Below, piece after piece: positions 40,447 through 60,961 of a DNA stretch of 64,000 nt. The notes under the pieces are model-generated. The model worked only from the letters and a program-made list of their open reading frames with translations. It made no database searches and was not told where the DNA came from. Position 1 is the stretch's first letter. Each line of letters starts with the position of its first letter. The stretch comes from Laetmonice hystrix (lineage: Eukaryota), in assembly GCA_965235115.1 (NCBI GenBank), contig OZ249445.1, forward strand, positions 3,596,001 through 3,660,000, in the 5' to 3' direction. A program made the translations under genes and the position numbers.

Positions 40447-43237
<2,791 letters not shown>

Positions 43238-46354: not shown

Positions 46355-46607
46355 TTAATCTTACTTCCACTCTCTGCTTTGCTCTTTATAGACTTGATTA
46401 ATGAGGTTCGATGGAGTCCCATCTGAATGTAAATTACCTTCAACTGATAAGCTCTGAATATAATCTGATATGTGAAAAACCAAACCCATTCACCTGCAGG
46501 TTTTTGTGCACACCTGCAGCATATCTTGCTCTCACAATCTTGACCCAACATTTTATATATATATACATGTTTATATTCTGATTATAATACAAGGTGACTT
46601 TGGTTTA

Positions 46608-46802
<195 letters not shown>

Positions 46803-48852
46803 TTATAGAAATGAAAATTAATGATGATATCATTCAGATGCCTTCAGTTATATGCCTTGCCGGATTTCATACCCATAATATATCAGGACTTTCTCGTGAC
46901 CAGATTACCAAGGCACATACAACCCCTTGCTGCGTTCTCTGTGAGAGGCAGGAGGAACCATGTGTATGCCCGGAACACGCGGAACATAACTGATCCACTA
47001 AGGAACCCTGGGATGGGAAACTATACTTCTGAAACAAAACACTTGAAATTTTGCCCGTAGTGCTGGGATCGCTGAGCTGTCCATTCCGTGTGGGGCCGTC
47101 AAAGTTAGGCGTTGTATTTGGCCAACAACAGTAAACCGAGATCCCTGAGAAACAAATCCCAATGACGACTGGCGAAACCCCCACAAAGGAACCTGCTGAC
47201 ATGAATCTTCCATTCTTTGAAATAAACATTACACCAAACTAAAAACCTACAAGTTCTATTTGCCCAAGCATGGTTTTCATGCTGAAACAATAGTCAATAT
47301 GTAGTGGTCAGCAGTGTGCTTCTCTCCATTGATCAGGTACATTTAAAGTATATATTTGGTATGTGATATGGCGATATGATAGAACAGACCCTCCGGACTA
47401 TTAAAGCTATGGGGTAACTAACTCATCACTCACCCCACATTGGGGAAATATCTCATCACTCACTCCAGGTATGGGAATTAACCTATAAGTCACACCAAAC
47501 CTCTGCACTAAACCACCAGTCAGCTAGTTTGTTAGGGTTTTTTTTTTAGGGGGGGGGGGGGATTTCCAGAGGGTTGCCTGCAGCAAGACTCCGGTTCTTA
47601 GTCCCAAATCAATCAGCCATTAGCATTAGCCAGACAAACCAGCATGGCAGATGGAAAGATTAGCGGGAAACCCACGTGGGAGCGAACATGTGGCCACGAC
47701 CTCGCCACCATCAGTCAACACCAAAATCAGGGAAGCCACAAAGCCAGTCATTCACAGTTGATGGCTTCCACAATATCACGGTGGCTTCCTAAAAGATTGA
47801 CTTGGCCAGGATGAATTCTTGTCAATGTATAATCGGGAGACAAGGACTGAGTGGACAATATTGTTGTGGTGGATACAGCGCGCTCCAAACACAGCCCGGT
47901 GTCCACACACTAACCCTGGCCCACAACAATGGTGGCGGGTCGGAGAGGGTGGTGGGTGTACCACTGTCTGTGCCATGAGCGTGGGAACGGTCAGTACTGT
48001 CTCCTAATGGATCTATTGGACACTGGATGGAATGATGTCAGGGCCCACCGACCTCAACTCAATGTTCTGTCATGACTGTCACTCACACAGACCACAGTCC
48101 AAATGGGCAGAATGAGCTTCCTGTACTGGCCCGGTGGCAACACTAACTTCGTAACAACAATAATCTCTCGTACAGGGATAGACCACTGTAACATATTTGA
48201 AAACCTCTCCTCTCTACAATATGTGGTCAGTTGTTTAAATGTCGCTTTGGGCGGTTAGTCAATATAGGCAGAGTTTTGTGTGTCATACATCAATAGGTAG
48301 TTTCCCAAATCTATTTCTTTCTTACTCCATCAATGCCCATGTTAGAAGTTAAAATCGGAATCATATGTATCCACCCCCCCCCCCACCCCTCCCCTGTATT
48401 GCCACACATGCCATCCTCTCGTCCACACAATATGTAATCTGGGAGGAGTATATTCTGCTGAGCCAGTTGTTTGACACTGAGTGCTGTGTGACAATATCTG
48501 CCGTTCACATGGGCCTTGAGCAGCAGTGCTGGCGAACGTACAGGATCAGAAATAGGTCACACCATCTCACCCCACACAGGACCCTAACCCAACCCAAACT
48601 TTCCCACGGCCTCGCTTTGATCTGTCTCCCCCAACCTTCCCAACCTAAAAAAGAATTGCCATATATATTGTCATTTCTCTGGCAGAGGTAATGGCCCACA
48701 GTAACAGCCAGCGCTGTTTGAGGGAGCATCTCATAATCGGTACGCCCCCATAGTAACACCCACGAAATTTGAGGGCGGGAACTAGAAGACTATTCCTAGC
48801 TCGAAACCTGGTCCCAGTCCCTAGCCTCACCAAAAATGATCTCTAGCCCTTC

Positions 48853-49008
48853 CAGTAGCGTACCCGGGGGGGGGGGGGGGCTTGCCAATTTGCCAATTTT
48901 TGTTGTTGTTTTTTGTGCGCTTGCTGCCTCGTAAAAGCCGTAAAAATAAGACTACGACGTTGGTTATTTCCAGCACCCCCCTGGGTCCAGTTTCTGGGTA
49001 CGCCACTG
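48853..49008. mobile_element. Short G-tract MITE with 5-bp TSD
   Basis: TIRs CAGTAGCGTACCC / GGGTACGCCACTG (12/13). CCTTC duplicated at 48848-48852 and 49009-49013. Confidence 0.75.
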
Positions 49009-49144
49009 CCTTCCCCATCCTAACCCCACTTTCATAGCAATATTACCGGGGGAATATACGGCGAACCCCAGAGACTAACTCATTGGTCGGCGGCTGGGGG
49101 TCGGTGGGAAGGACGTAGGGGGCGGGGCGGTCCCTCTGTACACC

Positions 49145-52100
49145 ACCATAAACATGTCCACCACCTCCCGGGCCTTCTCTTCTACCTCAGGACGGCTAGG
49201 GTTCTCACCGCTTACTGGGCACCATAAACATGTCCACCACCTCCCTGGCCTTCCCTCCTACCTCAGGACGGCTAGGGGTTCTCACCGCTTACTGGGCACC
49301 ATAAACATGTCCACCACCTCCCTGGCCTTCCCTCCTACCTCAGGACGGCTAGGGTTCTCACCGCTTACTGGGCACCATAAACATGTCCACCACCTCCCTG
49401 GCCTTCCCTCCTACCTCAGGACGGCTAGGGTTCTCACCGCTTACTGGGCACCATAAACATGTCCACCACCTCCCGGGCCTTCCCTCCTACCTCAGGACGG
49501 CTAGGGGTTCTCACCGCTTACTGGGCACCATAAACATGTCCACCACCTCCCTGGCCTTCCCTCCTACCTCAGGACGGCTAGGGGTTCTCACCGCTTACTG
49601 GGCACCATAAACATGTCCACCACCTCCCGGGCCTTCCCTCCTACCTCAGGACGGCTAGGGGTTCTCACCGCTTACTGGGCACCATAAACATGTCCACCAC
49701 CTCCCTGGCCTTCCCTCCTACCTCAGGACGGCTAGGGGTTCTCACCGCTTACTGGGCACCATAAACATGTCCACCACCTCCCGGGCCTTCCCTCCTACCT
49801 CAGGACGGCTAGGGGTTCTCACCGCTTACTGGGCACCATAAACATGTCCACCACCTCCCGGGCCTTCCCTCCTACCTCAGGACGGCTAGGGGTTCTCACC
49901 GCTTACTGGGCACCATAAACATGTCCACCACCTCCCGGGCCTTCCCTCCTACCTCACGACTGCTAGGGGTTCTCACCGCTTACTGGGCACCATAAACATG
50001 TCCACCACCTCCCGGGCCTTCCCTCCTACCTCAGGACGGCTAGGGGTTCTCACCGCTTACTGGGCACCATAAACATGTCCACCACCTCCCGGGCCTTCCC
50101 TCCTACCTCAGGACGGCTAGGGGTTCTCACCGCTTACTGGGCACCATAAACATGTCCACCACCTCCCGGGCCTTCCCTCCTACCTCAGGACGGCTAGGGG
50201 TTCTCACCGCTTACTGGGCACCATAAACATGTCCACCACCTCCCGGGCCTTCCCTCCTACCTCAGGACGGCTAGGGGTTCTCACCGCTTACTGGGCACCA
50301 TAAACATGTCCACCACCTCCCGGGCCTTCCCTCCTACCTCAGGACGGCTAGGGGTTCTCACCGCTTACTGGGCACCATAAACATGTCCACCACCTCCCGG
50401 GCCTTCCCTCCTACCTCACGACTGCTAGGGGTTCTCACCGCTTACTGGGCACCATAAACATGTCCACCACCTCCCGGGCCTTCCCTCCTACCTCACGACT
50501 GCTAGGGGTTCTCACCGCTTACTGGGCACCATAAACATGTCCACCACCTCCCGGGCCTTCCCTCCTACCTCAGGACGGCTAGGGGTTCTCACCGCTTACT
50601 GGGCACCATAAACATGTCCACCACCTCCCGGGCCTTCCCTCCTACCTCACGACGGCTAGGGGTTCTCACCGCTTACTGGGCACCATAAACATGTCCACCA
50701 CCTCCCGGGCCTTCCCTCCTACCTCACGACTGCTAGGGGTTCTCACCGCTTACTGGGCACCATAAACATGTCCACCACCTCCCGGGCCTTCCCTCCTACC
50801 TCAGGACGGCTAGGGGTTCTCACCGCTTACTGGGCACCATAAACATGTCCACCACCTCCCGGGCCTTCCCTCCTACCTCACGACGGCTAGGGGTTCTCAC
50901 CGCTTACTGGGCACCATAAACATGTCCATGCACCACCTCCCGGGCCTTCCCTCCTACCTCATGACGGCTAGGGGTTCTCACCGCTTACTGGGCACCATAA
51001 ACATGTCCACCACCTCCCGGGCCTTCCCTCCTACCTCAGGACGGCTGGGGGTTCTCACCGCTTACTGGGCATCATAAACATGTCCACCACCTCCCTGGCC
51101 TTCCCCCCTACCTCAGGACGGCTAGGGGTTCTCACCGCTTACTGGGCACCATAAACATGTCCACCACCTCCCGGGCCTTCCCTCCTACCTCAGGACGGCT
51201 AGGGGTTCTCACCGCTTACTGGGCACCATAAACATGTCCACCACCTCCCGGGCCTTGCCTCCTACCTCAGGACGGCTAGGGGTTCTCACCGCTTACTGGG
51301 CACCATAAACATGTCCACCACCTCCCGGGCCTTGCCTCCTACCTCAGGACGGCTAGGGGTTCTCATCGCTTACTGGGCACGATAAACATGTCCACCACCT
51401 CCCGGGCCTTCCCTCCTACCTCAGGACGGCTAGGGGTTCTCACCGCTTACTGGGCACCATAAACATGTCCACCACCTCCCGGGCCTTCCCTCCTACCTCA
51501 GGACGGCTAGGGGTTCTCACCGCTTACTGGGCACCATAAACATGTCCACCACCTCCCGGGCCTTCCCTCCTACCTCAGGACGGCTAGGGGTTCTCACCGC
51601 TTACTGGGCACCATAAACATGTCCACCACCTCCCTGGCCTTCCCTCCTACCTCACGACGGCTAGGGGTTCTCACCGCTTACTGGGCACCATAAACATGTC
51701 CACCACCTCCCTGGCCTTCCCCCCTACCTCAGGACGGCTAGGGGTTCTCACCGCTTACTGGGCACCATAAACATGTCCACCACCTCCCGGGCCTTCCCTC
51801 CTACCTCACGACTGCTAGGGGTTCTCACCGCTTACTGGGCACCATAAACATGTCCACCACCTCCCGGGCCTTCCCTCCTACCTCAGGACGGCTAGGGGTT
51901 CTCACCGCTTACTGGGCACCATAAACATGTCCACCACCTCCCGGGCCTTCCCCCCTACCTCAGGACGGCTAGGGGTTCTCACCGCTTACTGGGCACCATA
52001 AACATGTCCACCACCTCCCGGGCCTTCCCCCCTACCTCAGGACGGCTAGGGGTTCTCACCGCTTACTGGGCATCATAAACATGTCCACCACCTCCCGGGC

Positions 52101-52302
52101 CTTGCCTCCTACCTCAGGACGGCTAGGGGTTCTCATCGCTTACTGGGCACCATAAACATGTCCACCACCTCCCGGGCCTTCCCTCCTACCTCAGGACGGC
52201 TAGGGGTTCTCACCGCTTACTGGGCACCATAAACATGTCCACCACCTCCCGGGCCTTCCCTCCTACCTCAGGACGGCTAGGGGTTCTCACCGCTTACTGG
52301 GC
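49145..52302. repeat. 77-bp tandem array, ~41 copies, in the large CSL intron
   Basis: Unit ACCATAAACATGTCCACCACCTCCCGGGCCTTCCCTCCTACCTCAGGACGGCTAGGGGTTCTCACCGCTTACTGGGC. Confidence 0.98.
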
Positions 52303-52576
52303 AGACAATCAGGTCAGCCCGCAATCATTCCCACACTAACCGACACCACCTGGCTACATGGGTACCTCTTACTTAACCCTGCCCCTTCACCTTACACGTC
52401 ATCTGACCTCCAGCTTTTTGATCTCGGCGGATTCCTCAAAACCTTGGTCCTAAGTCCCCCAGAGGGCAGCAGGATTTCAGGAGTGGGTCTTCACATAGTC
52501 CTGCTGATCCCGGGACTGAGACGTCAGACATGAATTCAGTTTACAACCCCATTGTTGTAGATCGTTTGAGCAGGGA

Positions 52577-54368
52577 CATATATCCCCGTCTCCCAGACCC
52601 CAGCCCTAACAACATACATACCTGTCTCCCAGACGCCAGCCCTAACAACATACATACATGTCTCCCAGACCCCAGCCCTAACAACATACATACCTGTCTC
52701 CCAGACGCCAGCCCTAACAACATACATACATGTCTCCCAGACCCCAGCCCTAACAACATACATACCTGTCTCCCAGACCCCAGCCCTAACAACATACATA
52801 CCTGTCTCACAGACCCCAACCCTAACAACATTCATACCTGTCTCCCAGACCCCAGCCCTAACAACATACATACCTGTCTCCCAGACCCCAGCCCTAACAA
52901 CATACATACCTGTCTCCCAGACCCCAGCCCTAACAACATACATACCTGTCTCCCAGACCCCAGCCCTAACAACATACATACCTGTCTCCCAGACCCCAGC
53001 CCTAACAACATACATACCTGTCTCCCAGACCCCAGCCCTAACAACATTCATACCTGTCTCCCAGACCCCAGCCCTAACAACATTCATACCTGTCTCCCAG
53101 ACCCCAGCCCTAACAACATACATACCTGTCTCCCTGACCCCAACCCTAACAACATTCATACCTGTCTCCCTGACCCCAGCCCTAACAACATACATACCTG
53201 TCTCCCAGACCCCAGCCCTAACAACATACATACCTGTCTCCCAGACCCCAACCCTAACAACATTCATACCTGTCTCCCTGACCCCAACCCTAACAACATA
53301 CATACCTGTCACCCAGACCCCAACCCTAACAACATACATACCTGTCTCCCAGACCCCAGCCCTAACAACATACATACCTGTCTCCCAGACCCCAGCCCTA
53401 ACAACATTCATACCTATCTCCCAGACCCCAGCCCTAACAACATACATACCTGTCTCCCAGACCCCAACCCTAACAACATACATACCTGTCTCCCTGACCC
53501 CAACCCTAACAACATTCATACCTGTCTCCCTGACCCCAGCCCTAACAACATACATACCTGTCTCCCAGACCCCAGCCCTAACAACATACATACCTGTCTC
53601 CCAGACCCCAACCCTAACAACATTCATACCTGTCTCCCTGACCCCAACCCTAACAACATACATACCTGTCTCCCAGACCCCAACCCTAACAACATACATA
53701 CCTGTCACCCAGACCCCAACCCTAACAACATACATACCTGTCTCCCAGACCCCAGCCCTAACAACATACATACCTGTCTCCCAGACCCCAGCCCTAACAA
53801 CATACATACCTGTCTCCCAGACCCCAGCCCTAACAACATACATACCTGTCTCACAGACCCCAGCCCTAACAACATACATACCTGTCTCCCAGACCCCAGC
53901 CCTGAACAACATACATACCTGTCTCCCAGACCCCAGCCCTGAACAACATACATACCTGTCTCCCAGACCCCAGCCCTGAACAACATACATACCTGTCTCC
54001 CAGACCCCAACCCTAACAACATACATACCTGTCACCCAGACCCCAACCCTAACAACATACATACCTGTCTCCCAGACCCCAGCCCTAACAACATACATAC
54101 CTGTCTCCCAGACCCCAACCCTAACAACATACATACCTGTCTCCCTGACCCCAGCCCTGACAACATACATACCTGTCTCCCAGACCCCAGCCCTAACAAC
54201 ATACATACCTGTCTCCCTGACCCCAGCCCTGACAACATACATACCTGTCTCCCTGACCCCAGCCCTAACAACATACATACCTGTCTCCCAGACCCCAGCC
54301 CTAACAACATTCATACCTGTCTCCCTGACCCCAGCCCTAACAACATACACACCTGTCTCCCAGACCCT
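52577..54368. repeat. 36-bp tandem array, ~50 copies
   Basis: Unit CCTGTCTCCCAGACCCCAGCCCTAACAACATACATA. Confidence 0.98.
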
Positions 54369-56485
54369 AGCTCGGATCATCATACATCCCCGACTCCCAG
54401 ACCCCAGCCCTGAACAACATCTGAGATGTCTCAGGACCCCATATACCTGTTACTCTTGAGTTTTGTCATTCCTATCAATCCGGGGGGGGGGGGTTGTTAA
54501 AAAATTAAAAAATACATATTCTGAAGTGATAGCCGATCATTTAGGTGGAGAATGAAATTCTGGTATACATTTCTCTGTCTACAAGTTGCACTGTCTGGTT
54601 ACCAGGCCGAGGTGGGTGTTCAGAGGGTTGGGGTGGGTTGGGGTGGGGTGGGGCTGACTGGCGGGGATCAAACGGTGAGGCTAATGGAGGGTTACGAGTG
54701 TGGGAAAAATCTGGAGTTTCTGGGGTGGCCACCAGGTGGAGCCAGCCGCCACTCAGACAGATCAATTAATAGAGGGGGGACAGCGGGTAGGAGGGGCGGC
54801 CGTGCTGTGGGAAAAGCAGACACTCAGTCATGGGAACCTCTCTACAATGACCCGCCACCACCTCGGCCAGTAGCACCGCCAGCACCACCAGGCTGGCACC
54901 ACCAGTAGTAGCACCACCACGGCTGGCAGGCTGCTGATGGACGGACACCACAGCCAGGCCGGGTTGGACTCGGATCTGATCTAGGATCCCCACCTTACAT
55001 TGAATGACCCACCGCTGGATCCAACCGGTCACATCATCTCTCACTGTCATTTCAAGTTACCCTGGTTCACCTTGAGCTTGTCAGTCACAGACTTACGGGA
55101 GGATTAAACATCGGTTCTGCGAGAAGATACTTATATTTGGACAATTTTTCTCCGTGGTGAGTTGCCCTAATGACGACTGAACTCAATGTCCGGTTTTTCC
55201 CTGTATTTCCTTTCTAAATTTACGATAACAAAGAGTTATTGAAGTTCATATCATTATTTTTACACATCTTTAAATGCTTGCTAAAGTCACTTTCGGCTAA
55301 CTAATCCACGATTAGTTAGCGTGATAGGAAAGGTACTTTATGGCGTAGGAAGACGTCCTATACAGGTCCAAGGACGGGCACCTGTGAAGGAACCCGGGGC
55401 CAGGGGGCAAGTCAATCATCAGAAATTACGGTTAATTGGTCCAGAAGTTAAGTGTTAATTAGGCTATTTCTATAACACTAGTCCTGTAAACGACTTACTG
55501 GAACCAATACATGTATTATGGCATATAAATGCACCTTATAGATTCTATCATCGTGGGGTTTAACAAACAAACATATCTCAGAGAACATTTTTCTGTGGCT
55601 GATCCCCGATATACGCTCATCCTTTCTATAAAGATTCTAAATATGGCCTAAGTACCGTTAGGTCTTAGCACTAACCACCCCCGGCCAGCAGCAGCAGCAG
55701 CGGGAGAGGCTGGCCGCCCTCCCGGACCGTTCAATACCCTATCGGGTAGTTGTGGGAAAAGGCAGAGGTAAGCGTGAGAAGATTACCGACGACATGCAGG
55801 AGTCTGTGGCCGCGCTGGGACCCACACAACCGGCAGCGCGCACGCTCCCACCCCGCAAGCTCTTTTCTTATTCCGCTTGTCTTTTCATATGAGAAGGTAA
55901 AAATGTCAATGGGGCGGCATGGCAGGCATTTATTTTCTACAAATACCGACAACACTGACTGTGACAGGAAACATTTTACCATATGGTTGTGTACCGCCGC
56001 CGCTGGACGGCGCTGTGCTCCGAGAGAGGGCCTAACTTGAGGACGGACACCAGCGTGAGCTGTGCGCCACCTGACGTCGATTATCGACACTTTTTACACT
56101 TGACGGAACACAACCACCAGCATGTCGCACTACAAAACATGTCGTGGAAAAAACAAACAAAAGCTTGCTCTTTAATTCTACGTTTGCGATCTACTTCAAG
56201 CTGAATTTATCCCTCATACCTCTCAGTTACAATGCAAGAAATCAAATACTAAAGCAGATGATAGTATTTTTACGGCATACTGAGGGGGGGGGGGGGGGGA
56301 CCAGTAACAGGCGGATAGAAAATGCTCTGGCAGACAGTTACGTAAAATAAATACAGTAAAGATCCTTATAAGGCAAACGTAAATTAACCTGTATCAGTAA
56401 CAGAAGGACTTATTAAACATAATTGTAGACTCATACTTAAAACAATCTCCCATTTCAAAAAACTTCAAAATGAAGACATGGGGTG

Positions 56486-56560
56486 TTAGGTTAGGTTAGA
56501 TAAGGTTAGGTTAGGTTAGATAAGGTTAGGTTAGGTTAGATAAGGTTAGGTTAGGTTAGG
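56486..56560. repeat. TTAGG-based microsatellite with a 20-bp higher-order unit
   Basis: (TTAGATAAGGTTAGGTTAGG)n. Confidence 0.9.
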
Positions 56561-57539
56561 CTATATAAATCAATTACAGACAGAAATGGAGAAACCTATT
56601 GAAATTCAACATTCCAAATGTCTTGTCGCTATGAAGCGAACGTCTCATGGCTGGTTGTTGACCTGGCTGAGGTGGAATTTGCCACACTCAAGTCCGCAGG
56701 TAGTGTGGGAGGGTGGGAATGGTGAAGGTAGGTGGCTCATTACGTCGACATCCTCCGATGTTTTGCCGAGGGTAGGTTGGTGATTGACACTGCAACCCCA
56801 CACCTTCAACCTCTGTGTTGACATTTCACAGGGATCCCTGTCACCATGGCCTGCCCGCCGGCCGGCCGGCCCCGACCCGGGCTCCACGGCCGGATCACAA
56901 GTCTACCTGTACACTGTTCACCCAGGCAGTGTGCCGGTTGTCCAATGCCACACAAGGTGAACCGTTTCAAACCTGCCTGACTGTGGCGTATAATGTTACG
57001 TAACACCGCCCAGTTACCTGCCTGGTTTCACCACTTGTACGTCTATACTGACCAGCAAAACTCATAGACAAGTGAACCAGCTATGGGTTGACAGTGGCAA
57101 ATTTCAAAGAACAGCGGGAACTGTCTAAAGCCGGGTCGAGATGATAGGTTTTAACCTTCACGTCGCGCCCCACAGGAAAACTTACCGTCCGTACAGGTGC
57201 TGGGAGAAGATTTCCGAGAGGTTTGCTCGTTCGAAAGTTTTGTCTTACGGAATAGAGAGATTTTTATTTCCATCGGTAAAACTTCTGTTTGATAACATCT
57301 CTGACCAATCACCGCACGTGTGTCTGGCACGTGGCGGAAGCGAGAATATTTTTTCTTAGACCTGACGTCACGGCCATTTCCTGACAGTGACTTCCCACGG
57401 GCCCGTAGCCTGCATGGCTGGCTTCCGACCTCTTCCCCCATGATAACTTCCCCACAAAATTTTTGGGCAGGAGGTCGGGTTAAGGTATATGTTTTTGGGA
57501 GATTCGTACACAAGTACACTGTAGCCAAGATAATACTGG

Positions 57540-57547
57540 CAGCAGCA

Positions 57548-57606
<59 letters not shown>

Positions 57607-57644
57607 ACAGCAGCAGCAGCCAGCAGCAGCAGCAGCAGCAGCAG
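57540..57644. repeat. Interrupted (CAG)n/(CTG)n microsatellite, ~33 triplets
   Basis: Read directly; longest pure run about 18 CAG. Confidence 0.97.
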
Positions 57645-58832
57645 TACTTTGTTCTTTGATTTCCTCATATTTACCGCATAGGTCAATTGCCCCATCGTGA
57701 AAATCAATTGTAGAAACCTAAAGGAAATACCTATCGACCCCGCTTAAGTCGTAACACTGATCACAACCCAGTACAAATTACTTTACAATGCCTAAAACTA
57801 TAGGAATGATTACTCCGTCCTCCAGGGTGGGACTGTCAATCCAACAACAGTATTCCAATCCCCAAGAGCCCTCCGTCTCTCTGCACACCTTCCATAGTTA
57901 CACCCTGGATAACACCCCCCCGGTCGGTGTACCCCAGGTCTGATCCCAGGACCATCTCCACACCCTCTCAGATGACAGAGGGGTAAACTGTCCCACCCTC
58001 CGTACGGATCCGGAGGTGAGAGTCAGTGGGGTACGTACGGGCCCATAGGCACGCTACAGGGCTCAACTCCGGGGCCGTGACCTTGAAACAATACAGTGTT
58101 ATGTTTTTGAGTGTCGTTTCTCACCATTCAACATTGGACAAGTGTTACCAACACTAATATGTCATACTACCGTTTCCGCACACAGCCGAGGGCAAGGCCT
58201 TCATAGGGTTGCTGTAGGAACACTTAAACCACATCAATTCAGCTAAAGTCGCCATCTAGATAGCCTGCGCAGGACCAAGTTGTTGTTTTGACACAAGGAC
58301 AACATGTTAGCAGCGACTACCAGAACTTGGCCTCAGCTATGACATCGGACCAAATTTATGGGTGACAATGCCAGACTGTGTTGTTTAATGTCGAGCCTTC
58401 TTACCCACGGTTCAGCTTTTGACCCGGTAACATTTCCCAACCTCAAAACATGAGCTTCGTTCACAGAGTACTACTGGGCACGGCGACTGGGCTGGGTGTG
58501 GGAGCGGGGTGGGGCTGAGAGGGGTGAGGTTAAACGCCTAACGGGGCACAGAATACTACGTCATCTTTGATCACCGGAAACGGGGAAACCCTGGCGACGT
58601 GACATCACAGATACAGAGGGCACTGAACCGGGCACTCAATCTACGGCGACAACTGCAGCATAATCCAATAAAGAAATAAATACTCGAGTTCTTCTGCAAG
58701 AAATGATTTTGCAATGACCCTACCCTGCACGTTTACCAGTCAGGAAGGCCCTATATTTTGTTACTATCTATATATAGTCTTATTTGCCCCTGACTCAGGC
58801 ATCCATCCTTTTAAGAACCTTCACTGACCATT

Positions 58833-59030
58833 GACCGTCCACCCAATGTTTGACGACCGTCCACCCAATGTTTGACGACCGTCCACCCAATGTTTGACGA
58901 CCGTCCACCCAATGTTTGACGACCGTCCACCCAATGTTTGACGACCGTCCACCCAATGTTTGACGACCGTCCACCCAATGTTTGACGACCGTCCACCCAA
59001 TGTTTGACGACCGTCCACCCAATGTTTGAC
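58833..59030. repeat. 22-bp tandem repeat, 9 copies
   Basis: Unit GACCGTCCACCCAATGTTTGAC. Confidence 0.96.
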
Positions 59031-60706
59031 GGTCGGTATTGCCAGGCAGTTCCATTCTATCTAAGGTCTACCAAACCACCCGGGCCTGGGCGGCCCGACA
59101 CCGCCAACTCTGACCATTACCCATTTGTTTTAACTGCCCTTTTGGCCAGGGATCACTATCCAACATACAGGCTTGGCGACGGCTGGGAAGATTTCGGGGC
59201 GAGGGGGAAGCAAGAAAAAATCCGGCCACCCTCTCTACCGCAGCCACGGTCCTGGCAGGCCAAGCACTACCGTTCTCTCGGTCTGGGCCACACCAATGAT
59301 ACGCCTGGGAACCGGCGCGACCTGATCTACGGCACAGGGTTACGGGGTCAACACAGCCGTGGATCAAGGTCACACCCAAAAAGAGCTGGGAGGGGGGCTG
59401 CCCAGATCAGGGGTATTCTAAGTTTATATGTTAAAATATATATTAAGCATCAGCCGATCAAGGTATGACTTTATCTGTTAAGAGATGTTTTTTCAGCAAA
59501 AGTGTGTAATGATGAGTCTTTTCTGTCTGGTCGTGGAGCACCAAGAGAACCAGACACGTTCATAGCCTGGGCCCAGTTTGTAAAAACTTCAGATCTTGCT
59601 TAAGCTTAAGGCTTCTGATTGAAACTTAGACCGTTGTATTATAAATTAATTAGGCAATTTTTTCATAGTGAACAACCATAAAATGTGGAATAAAGTTAGA
59701 GCGCAGCCGGAGGTGGGATTGGAGATCGAGTGAGGGCAGTGGGATTGACAGCGGCATACGGTACGGCCTCTACCGCCCCCCGTGCGTGTCCCCGCCGCCC
59801 GCCCCACCGACCGCCACTCTTTGACAGACCCGCCGTCTAATGTTTTGTGGCCAGTCCACCTAATTGCCTCAATGTGCCACTGATCTCTGCTTTGGTCTTT
59901 CCTCGCCTAACCCGTTAAGGATCAGTTCAGGGAGGGTACAACACAAGGGGAGAACCCTCACTGGGGTTGTCTGAGGGTAACACGACTGCCTGCCCCAACT
60001 GGGGTGCGGGGACTCACCCTGTGTGCACCCTTTGGTCTGCCCGACACCCGCCCAGCAAGACGTGGCCGGGTTATGTACCAAAGACTGACAGCAACTGTTT
60101 ATTACATACTTTGAAGTGTTTTCAAGGCTTTTTTGAAAGATCCTGACGTGTCTTGGTCGTGTCAGTAAGTCATTGAACACAACCGAGGTCCCTATAAATT
60201 CTGGGTTCATTAACTGGAGGCGGCGACTGCTGGGCCCAGTGAAGTCTCGGTATTACAGGGTGGGAAACCCAACCCCTACACCCAGACACCCTTCTCCTTA
60301 CCGCTACACTGCTCCACACTGGGCGGGCACTATAATGGCGACATAGAGTTCGACACCAAGGTAATTAACTACAATCACGTTACGGGAAGAAGAACAGTAT
60401 AAAGGTTAAAAACTGCTGATGGAACACCTGCATACATACATTACTTCGTCTTGTGAAAAATCACACGATGTCCTGCTACGGGGAGACAAGATGCCCCACC
60501 TTTCCACATTTAGTGATTACAAAAATTAATGTGGAGATCTGATATAGGTTAGTCCATCAATACAAGAACATAAATTTCAATGATTAGGTAAGGGTAATCC
60601 CCATGGTAATCCCTACTTGAAATTTACACGTCAAACCTAAAAATTATCATTACTGCTATGCCATAACCCTAACCCTAACCGCTACTCCTGGTCTGGATAA
60701 CCTCTA

Positions 60707-60961
<255 letters not shown>

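Follow-up and report, generated by a model that had tools for sequence, protein, structure and literature searches.

The CSL gene and its large intron

The window, which is the whole 64-kb stretch of Laetmonice hystrix DNA analyzed here, contains part of a CSL (Su(H)/RBPJ/LAG-1) gene. The LAG1-DNAbind, BTD and TIG_SUH exons were each found in one copy genome-wide, all at the same locus, and the genome was therefore assigned a single CSL gene. The exon-wise Pfam matches were above the curated cut-offs and collinear on the minus strand, in the CSL domain order LAG1-DNAbind, BTD, TIG_SUH. The eight core exons showed 82-87% identity to spiralian CSL proteins by tblastn, the nearest proteins being of nemertean, mollusc and annelid origin. 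Two coding exons on the minus strand, one carrying LAG1-DNAbind positions 18-88 (60767-60934) and the other positions 90-152 (46587-46787), were separated by a phase 0 intron of 13,979 bp on the same strand (46788-60766). The bounds of this intron were defined by Pfam exon matches, by open frames and GT/AG junctions in translation, and by tblastn with spiralian CSL proteins. It was not the first intron of the gene, and a search within it for a nested gene or non-coding RNA yielded ten ORFs without a Pfam match and no match in Rfam.

Two tandem arrays were present in the intron: a 77-bp minisatellite of 41 copies with 97-99% identity (49144-52303) and a 36-bp minisatellite of 51 copies without the CSL core (52576-54420). 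Together they made up 53% of the 9.4-kb span from 47980 to 57399 and contained zero perfect sites, in agreement with the original prediction that about half of the span is tandem repeat lacking such sites. The 77-bp array was absent from the rest of the genome, and the identity of its units indicates a very recent expansion. A near-consensus word, GGTGAGAAC, was found in 39 of its 41 units, always on the minus (sense) strand; this word departs from the consensus at position 1 and has the weaker core GTGAGAA. Intronic minisatellites without CSL cores were common in the genome, with at least seven in the CSL locus alone. Additionally, the intron contained two dispersed repeats with many genomic copies and no CSL site, a short one at 48845-49020 and a MITE-like one at 56445-56667.

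A rescan of the window revealed 13 perfect YGTGRGAA sites, of which eight lay in the span 47980-57399 and five elsewhere. The positions and orientations of the eight were exactly those predicted, as were the pairs at 54699/54806 and 55751/55773 (the latter 22 bp apart on the same strand) and the five further sites, and all eight were located within the large CSL intron, as had been claimed. In particular, CGTGGGAA was found at 47980-47987 (plus strand, next base C), at 48601-48608 (minus strand, next base A) and at 57392-57399 (minus strand), with GTTGGGAAG lying 36 bp from the 48601 site on the same strand, and TGTGGGAA was found at 52328-52335 (minus strand) inside the 272-bp spacer that separates both arrays. 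In the densest sub-cluster, five sites, all on the plus strand, fell within a single-copy stretch of 1,082 bp (54699-55780), namely TGTGGGAAA at 54699, 54806 and 55751, CATGGGAAC at 54829 and CGTGAGAAG at 55773; CATGGGAAC and CGTGAGAAG are weaker variants. The core GTGGGAA was also present after G rather than Y on the plus strand, at 49104-49110, 56713-56719 and 60260-60266, and after A on the minus strand at 60717-60723, the last of these about 45 bp short of the 60767-60934 exon. The site density across the intron was approximately 1.2 per kb, with a spacing of about one per 0.8-2 kb and a maximum of five in 1.08 kb, and the 54699-55780 segment is the best candidate for an enhancer core within the span.

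The site-bearing DNA was single-copy, and the region 54421-56400 was unique in the genome. An origin of the sites from a transposon or by duplication was rejected, given this single-copy region and site flanks that did not align with one another.

Site excess in the 5' half of the gene

We found that the span contained far more CSL sites than the genome-wide rate would provide. There were 83,726 YGTGRGAA sites in 627.5 Mb (1.33 per 10 kb), corresponding to an expectation of 1.26 in the span versus the eight seen, and YGTGGGAA (0.61 per 10 kb) was expected 0.58 times versus seven seen. The arithmetic of the original prediction, 1.7 sites expected in the intron at uniform base composition, was correct. 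When the 8,977 bases outside the arrays were dinucleotide-shuffled, the expected counts were 1.41 for YGTGRGAA and 0.91 for YGTGGGAA, and none of 3000 shuffles reached eight or seven, respectively. In the intron, GTGGGAA was seen 11 times versus 1.1 expected from the genome rate or 2.5 from a third-order Markov model; this model fitted the reference DNA (37.5 predicted versus 37 seen) but under-predicted the locus 3.6-fold. The motif was also permuted by column in 3360 ways, and a count of eight was reached by no words other than those of the GTTAG microsatellite and the motif's own variants.

An empirical overdispersed null was built from 16 random 10-kb windows of the genome together with the whole-genome counts. 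The maxima in the 16 pieces were five YGTGRGAA, four YGTGGGAA and six GTGGGAA, and a negative-binomial fit to them gave P = 3e-3 for at least seven YGTGGGAA and P = 9e-4 for at least 11 GTGGGAA. At a P-value of only ~1e-3 under this null, the genome would be expected to contain around a hundred 9-kb windows that are just as dense. In summary, the site excess of the intron was 6- to 12-fold above the genome rate, with P ~1e-3 under the overdispersed null and ~1e-5 under the shuffles. The intron exceeded the genome-wide rate, the shuffles and the 16 random pieces, and its homotypic excess of CSL sites is greater than chance. The 64-kb window as a whole was not enriched (13 sites versus 8.9 +/- 3.0; 12 of 100 shuffles reached 13).

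The proposal that the large intron is enriched held in itself, but the enrichment was not confined to that intron. Approximately 40 kb of upstream introns outside the window, chosen blind to their sites and not part of the DNA from which the prediction had been made, contained 16 GTGGGAA versus 7.2 expected and 12 YGTGGGAA versus 3.5. One cluster of upstream sites lies at contig positions 3687088-3688222. In contrast, the 3' half of the gene was at background (six GTGGGAA versus 7.3; three YGTGGGAA versus 3.35). The sites were spread across roughly 57 kb and several 5' introns, and the excess spans the whole 5' half of the CSL locus rather than one intron alone.

We compared the locus with those of four distant spiralians. 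The best CSL protein identities found in any species were 86.5% overall and 76-78% on the last exon. When the four loci were pooled, their 5' parts contained 24 GTGGGAA versus 12.8 expected (P = 0.003) and their 3' parts three versus 5.9. A weaker 5' excess was observed in three of the four, Lingula, Tubulanus and Elysia, whereas the Potamilus locus showed no excess anywhere along it. No counterpart of the individual sites was seen in these species: in all four, the corresponding intron was 0.3-5 kb long and contained zero sites, which suggests that the intron sites of L. hystrix are lineage-specific. From this comparison, the 14-kb site-rich intron is best described as a lineage-specific expansion, with no conservation of intron position, and caution is needed when enhancer locations are transferred between phyla. 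It is conceivable, though improbable, that CSL-site-rich 5' introns as such are ancestral to protostomes and common to Ecdysozoa and Spiralia.

Motif specificity and alternative explanations

The frequency of GTGGG was similar in the locus and outside it (3.9 versus 3.5 per kb), and the difference lay in how the word continued. Of the GTGGG words in the locus, a fraction of 0.155-0.25 continued with AA (0.25 in the intron), versus 0.054 in the reference DNA, and the share of TGGGAA words preceded by G was 0.50-0.58 versus 0.29. A pyrimidine stood directly before the core in 19 of 27 sites, and GTGGGAA ranked 6th of 8192 heptamers by enrichment in the repeat-masked 5' locus. What is enriched, specifically, is the complete CSL core.

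The excess could still be non-functional and without meaningful CSL occupancy; it would then stem both from the regional higher-order bias of a locus that is rich in G and prone to minisatellites and from post-hoc choice. Several G-rich heptamers with no relation to CSL, GGGTGGG, GGGGTGG and GGAGGAG among them, were also highly enriched in the locus, and GGGTGGG and GGGGTGG point to some regional sequence bias. Such a bias does not readily account for the lack of GTGGG enrichment apart from its AA extension, nor for a Markov model that was exact on reference DNA and too low at the locus. The overdispersed background, with up to six GTGGGAA per 10 kb and a negative-binomial P of only ~1e-3, also favors a chance origin, but the excess was replicated in the blind-picked 40 kb and was missing from the 3' half. 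The sites are sparse and scattered, their positions are not conserved in the four other species, and Potamilus lacks the excess; yet the 5'-biased pattern recurred in Lingula, Tubulanus and Elysia, and the gene concerned is exactly the one for which there was a prior expectation. The bases flanking the cores (Y at -1, A/C at +1) were not distinctive either, showing no clear difference from background sites. On balance, we consider a non-functional excess unlikely, although it is the alternative to be taken most seriously.

The sites might instead be functional for a different factor or a different gene. TGGGAA is common to several factor families, such that a Rel/NF-kB half-site or an Ikaros-like zinc finger protein could be involved, and intronic enhancers frequently act on other promoters, so CSL-bound elements here could serve a neighboring gene. 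A MINDY-type deubiquitinase gene lies head-to-head with CSL, upstream of it, in Lingula and Elysia, and the L. hystrix CSL gene may therefore have a close neighbor as well. Against this alternative stand the preference for G before TGGGAA and the frequent pyrimidine before that, with the enrichment strongest for the full CSL core, and also the enriched domain itself, which coincides with the CSL 5' introns and ends at the 3' half. With autoregulation of the orthologous gene documented in two other phyla (PMC4133882, PMC3390367), we regard both variants taken together as improbable.

That the 77-bp minisatellite is the true CSL-binding feature, a low-affinity array acting as an enhancer or local sink with the perfect sites secondary, is a remote prospect: the array carries 39 copies of GGTGAGAAC in a single orientation, is private to the locus and sits mid-way in the site-rich intron, and the base preceding TGGGAA is not critical to LAG-1 binding in C. 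elegans (PMC4133882), but its unit misses consensus position 1, has the weaker core and expanded very recently, and because intronic minisatellites are so numerous, one near-match by chance among them is unremarkable. It is likewise highly improbable that this young, private minisatellite has amplified a near-consensus site which, if bound by CSL, would make copy number a fast-evolving dial on autoregulation. If it were so, the copy number of the array would possibly be polymorphic, and the array could play a role as an enhancer amplifier or local sink.

Proposed autoregulation and comparison with known systems

CSL is the sole DNA-binding effector of Notch signaling. CSL core sites (GTGGGAA, mostly as YGTGGGAA) have accumulated in the unique non-coding DNA of the gene's 5' half, the expanded 14-kb intron included. 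On the most likely reading, CSL would bind its own locus, rendering CSL transcription Notch-responsive. When no signal is present, the CSL gene would be damped by CSL and its co-repressors; upon signaling, CSL with the Notch intracellular domain (NICD) and Mastermind would activate it, and the outcome would be positive feedback in signal-receiving cells, as already established for C. elegans lag-1 intron 1 and the Drosophila Su(H) socket enhancer. Such feedback on the CSL level would alter the sharpness of commitment to alternative cell fates. A CSL-motif excess in the 5' introns far above the genome background suggests that the gene may well regulate itself as in flies and worms, and we regard autoregulation of the CSL gene as plausible, with about an even chance of being correct. 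From the sequence we infer the CSL occupancy, the enhancer activity and CSL itself as the regulated gene. The specific, replicated 5' excess, together with its fainter equivalent in Lingula, Tubulanus and Elysia, further suggests that CSL feedback may be widespread in protostomes. To our knowledge, direct autoregulation of CSL has been demonstrated in two ecdysozoans only, Drosophila and C. elegans. A further study by Luo, Underwood and Greenwald in 2020, cited in PMC8289040, is said to be pertinent to the C. elegans lag-1 cluster.

The paired sites (SPS) of E(spl)/HES-type Notch targets consist of a head-to-head CSL pair with a spacer of ~15-17 bp, which permits dimeric Notch complexes. The L. 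hystrix intron has the same CSL core motif, but the SPS architecture was absent from it, all close pairs in the intron being head-to-tail direct repeats at 22, 23 and 36 bp. Outside the window, one head-to-head pair, the sole one observed, had a 14-nt spacer.

The original prediction had named Drosophila Su(H) as the precedent, and this precedent exists. The Su(H) Autoregulatory Socket Enhancer (ASE) maintains transcription of Su(H) itself through clustered high-affinity Su(H) sites, and its element ASE5 holds five such sites in 0.4 kb just downstream of the gene and also requires Vvl (POU-HD) and A-motif inputs (PMC3390367). The L. hystrix locus resembles the ASE in that CSL sites lie in or directly beside the CSL gene. 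Unlike those of ASE5, however, its sites are intronic, located 5' and much less dense, and when the 75 bp around each of the 27 sites were searched for a partner, or "local activator", motif, no hexamer survived multiple testing (best P 1.5e-4 among 2080 words).

Intron 1 of C. elegans lag-1 is a closer precedent still; it contains 13 LAG-1 sites in 1,758 bp, clustered at the 5' end of the intron, for which EMSA, ChIP and reporters that depend on the sites provided support (Choi, Park & Hwang 2013, PMC4133882). The density is 7 per kb in lag-1 intron 1 and 12 per kb in ASE5, and the L. hystrix intron is far sparser; known modules hold 5-13 sites in 0.4-1.8 kb, compared with five in 1,082 bp, two of them weaker variants, at best here. 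The lag-1 cluster is compact, lies in a first intron and is experimentally validated, whereas the predicted L. hystrix sites are dispersed over several 5' introns, and the large intron considered here is not the first. Nevertheless, both genes show a homotypic excess of CSL sites within their own intron, argued from site frequency, and the logic proposed for L. hystrix, repression without Notch and activation with NICD, is similar to that of lag-1.

Structure of the CSL gene and its 14-kb intron

A Pfam search of the whole 627-Mb, 35-contig genome revealed one match each for LAG1-DNAbind, BTD and TIG_SUH, collinear on the minus strand and all inside the window, which identified the locus as the genome's single CSL (Su(H)/RBPJ/LAG-1) gene. 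Eight core coding exons were located between 35819 and 60934 by tblastn with spiralian CSL proteins (best query identity 86.5%, Lineus longissimus; chiton, annelid and bivalve proteins, 82-85%). One coding exon (HSP 40656-40492) overlapped the first unit of a 79-bp x 32 tandem array in the next intron (40637-43183). As read from the minus strand, the exon ending ...LNLDGK has its boundary at 60767, with GT next, and the downstream exon begins at 46787 after CAG; the intron thus spans 46788-60766 (13,979 bp). In the 40 kb of upstream DNA, where window numbering is continued and C11 denotes the contig of which the window covers 3596001-3660000, we found further exons at 73612-73710 (C11:3669612-3669710) and 86516-86776 (C11:3682516-3682776), and a probable, putatively first coding exon at about 97986-98369 (about C11:3693986-3694369). 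The gene therefore exceeds 63 kb, running on for at least 34 kb past the window, and its first intron is not the 14-kb one.

The intron contains a 77-bp x 41 minisatellite (49144-52303; 97-99% identity among copies) that is absent from the rest of the genome, a 36-bp x 51 minisatellite (52576-54420), and two dispersed MITE-like repeats of about 120-220 bp (56445-56667 and 48845-49020), for which hundreds to thousands of first-look candidates, 80-96% identical, were obtained across the genome. The remaining DNA, about 9 kb, is otherwise single-copy. No intron ORF was recognisable by Pfam, including those overlapping a (GCA)34 microsatellite at 57539-57644, and no Rfam family was found in the intron. 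Seven more minisatellites with periods of 22-73 bp were present in the CSL introns of C11:3660001-3700000.

Excess and arrangement of CSL sites

The original prediction listed 13 perfect sites in the window for YGTGRGAA, which with a final H is the Su(H) motif definition in Drosophila genomics (bioRxiv 10.1101/055707), 8 of them within 47980-57399. We reproduced this list exactly and recovered the site pairs and orientations as stated. The stronger form YGTGGGAA accounted for seven of the eight, and 11 of the window's 17 GTGGGAA cores fell in the 9 kb of intron outside the two arrays. The densest part of that span, the 1,082 bp at 54699-55780, held five sites, of which two were weaker variants. 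The window as a whole was not enriched (13 sites versus 8.9 +/- 3.0); the excess is local.

Genome-wide, YGTGRGAA, YGTGGGAA and GTGGGAA occur 83,726, 38,401 and 76,831 times (1.33, 0.61 and 1.22 per 10 kb). At these rates the 9,420-bp span 47980-57399 should hold about 1.3 YGTGRGAA and 0.6 YGTGGGAA, versus 8 and 7 observed, and the 8,977 non-array intron bases 1.1 GTGGGAA, versus 11. Dinucleotide shuffles of the non-array intron gave expectations of 1.41 YGTGRGAA and 0.91 YGTGGGAA, and none of 3000 reached the observed counts. Among 3360 column permutations of the motif, counts of at least 8 were obtained only for GTTAG-microsatellite words and for motif variants differing in a single column. 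A third-order Markov model predicted 2.5 GTGGGAA in the repeat-masked intron versus the 11 observed; in reference DNA the same estimator predicted 37.5 versus 37. GTGGG was no commoner in the locus (3.9 versus 3.5 per kb in the reference), whereas the next two bases were AA for 25% of intronic GTGGG versus 5.4%, and G preceded TGGGAA in 58% versus 29%; the excess is therefore one of the full CSL core, not a consequence of G-rich composition. Sixteen random 10-kb genome pieces contained 0-5 YGTGRGAA, 0-4 YGTGGGAA and 0-6 GTGGGAA each. The empirical overdispersed null built on these 16 windows only, the most conservative estimate used, gave negative-binomial tails of 3e-3 and 9e-4, so that intron site density lies above the genome-matched background at P about 1e-3.

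The upstream 40 kb, outside the original prediction, contained 16 GTGGGAA versus 7.2 expected and 12 YGTGGGAA versus 3.5, including tight groups of four cores in 1.1 kb (91088-92222, about C11:3687088-3688222) and three in 0.8 kb (85306-86070, about C11:3681306-3682070). Over the 5' part of the locus, 19 YGTGGGAA were observed versus 5.3 under a first-order Markov model (P = 3.5e-6), while the 3' half of the gene and downstream DNA were unenriched (3 versus 3.35). The excess is stronger and broader than originally stated. In the masked 5' locus GTGGGAA ranked 6th of 8192 heptamers; other top-ranked heptamers were G-rich (GGGTGGG, GGGGTGG, GGAGGAG), and some regional bias therefore accompanies the specific signal.

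The 27 cores of the 5' locus were divided between strands (13 plus, 14 minus), and Y directly preceded 19 of them; flank bases beyond Y were not separable from those of background sites, and no co-occurring hexamers were found nearby. All close pairs in the intron (22, 23 and 36 bp) were head-to-tail, so the head-to-head SPS arrangement of paired Su(H) sites is absent there. One head-to-head pair, CCGTGGGAAAGTTTGCAGGCATTTTCCCAGG, was seen at C11:3695996-3696022, beyond the window and about 1.6 kb 5' of the putative first coding exon; the pair resembles an SPS, but its spacer is 14 nt long and its second half reads CTGGGAA. An identical 15-mer, CCGTGGGAAAGTTTG, occurs at CSL sites 48601-48615 and C11:3695994-3696008, about 51 kb apart. 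The match could be fortuitous, with odds of roughly 1-5% across 351 site pairs, or could point to an extended composite motif.

CSL loci of other spiralians

We compared the CSL loci of Lingula anatina, Tubulanus polymorphus, Potamilus streckersoni and Elysia chlorotica, none a close relative. The counterpart introns measured 329, 542, 4,952 and 271 bp, respectively, and none of these four distant spiralians had GTGGGAA there; the 14-kb intron with its sites thus represents a lineage-specific expansion or gain. Pooled over the four species, the 5' parts contained 24 GTGGGAA versus 12.8 expected (P = 0.003; 3rd of 105 letter permutations) and 16 YGTGGGAA versus 6.4 (P = 0.001), and the 3' parts 3 versus 5.9 and 1 versus 3.2. 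Three species carried this signal: Lingula, with five sites in the intron before the exon matching 86516-86776; Tubulanus, with eight ahead of that exon, located in the upstream flank and the first intron; and Elysia, with three perfect YGTGGGAA in 612 bp (L031:8777-9396, its CSL locus), 0.6-1.2 kb before the annotated start of CSL, which looks like a promoter-proximal cluster. Potamilus showed no excess. The cross-species 5' excess is suggestive, not conclusive. In Lingula (L008:1-7557) and Elysia (L031:1-4455) the upstream neighbour of CSL, in head-to-head orientation, is a MINDY_DUB deubiquitinase gene, a microsynteny conserved across phyla.

Candidate autoregulation

The best reading, to which we give roughly even chances, is binding of CSL to the 5' introns of its own gene, which would make CSL transcription Notch-responsive. 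The autoregulatory interpretation of these candidate sites is plausible; its restriction to the large intron was partly wrong, as the intron is enriched and so are the upstream 40 kb. The main rival, a site excess of no function, is possible but the less probable account. In its favour, the sites are dispersed at low density, their positions are not conserved in the four species compared, other G-rich words are co-enriched and the overdispersed-null P is only about 1e-3, while the base-extension frequencies assign the excess to the full core. That a different factor uses the sites, or that they serve a different gene, appears improbable. It is more improbable still that the private 77-bp minisatellite acts as a low-affinity CSL array, for which speaks GGTGAGAAC, agreeing with the CSL consensus save at its first base and present in 39 units in a single orientation, that of the gene's sense strand.

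Such autoregulation has been demonstrated for two CSL orthologues. The Su(H) autoregulatory socket enhancer ASE5, which adjoins its gene, packs five sites into 0.4 kb (PMC3390367), and intron 1 of lag-1 carries 13 within 1,758 bp, with support from EMSA, ChIP and site-dependent reporters (PMC4133882).
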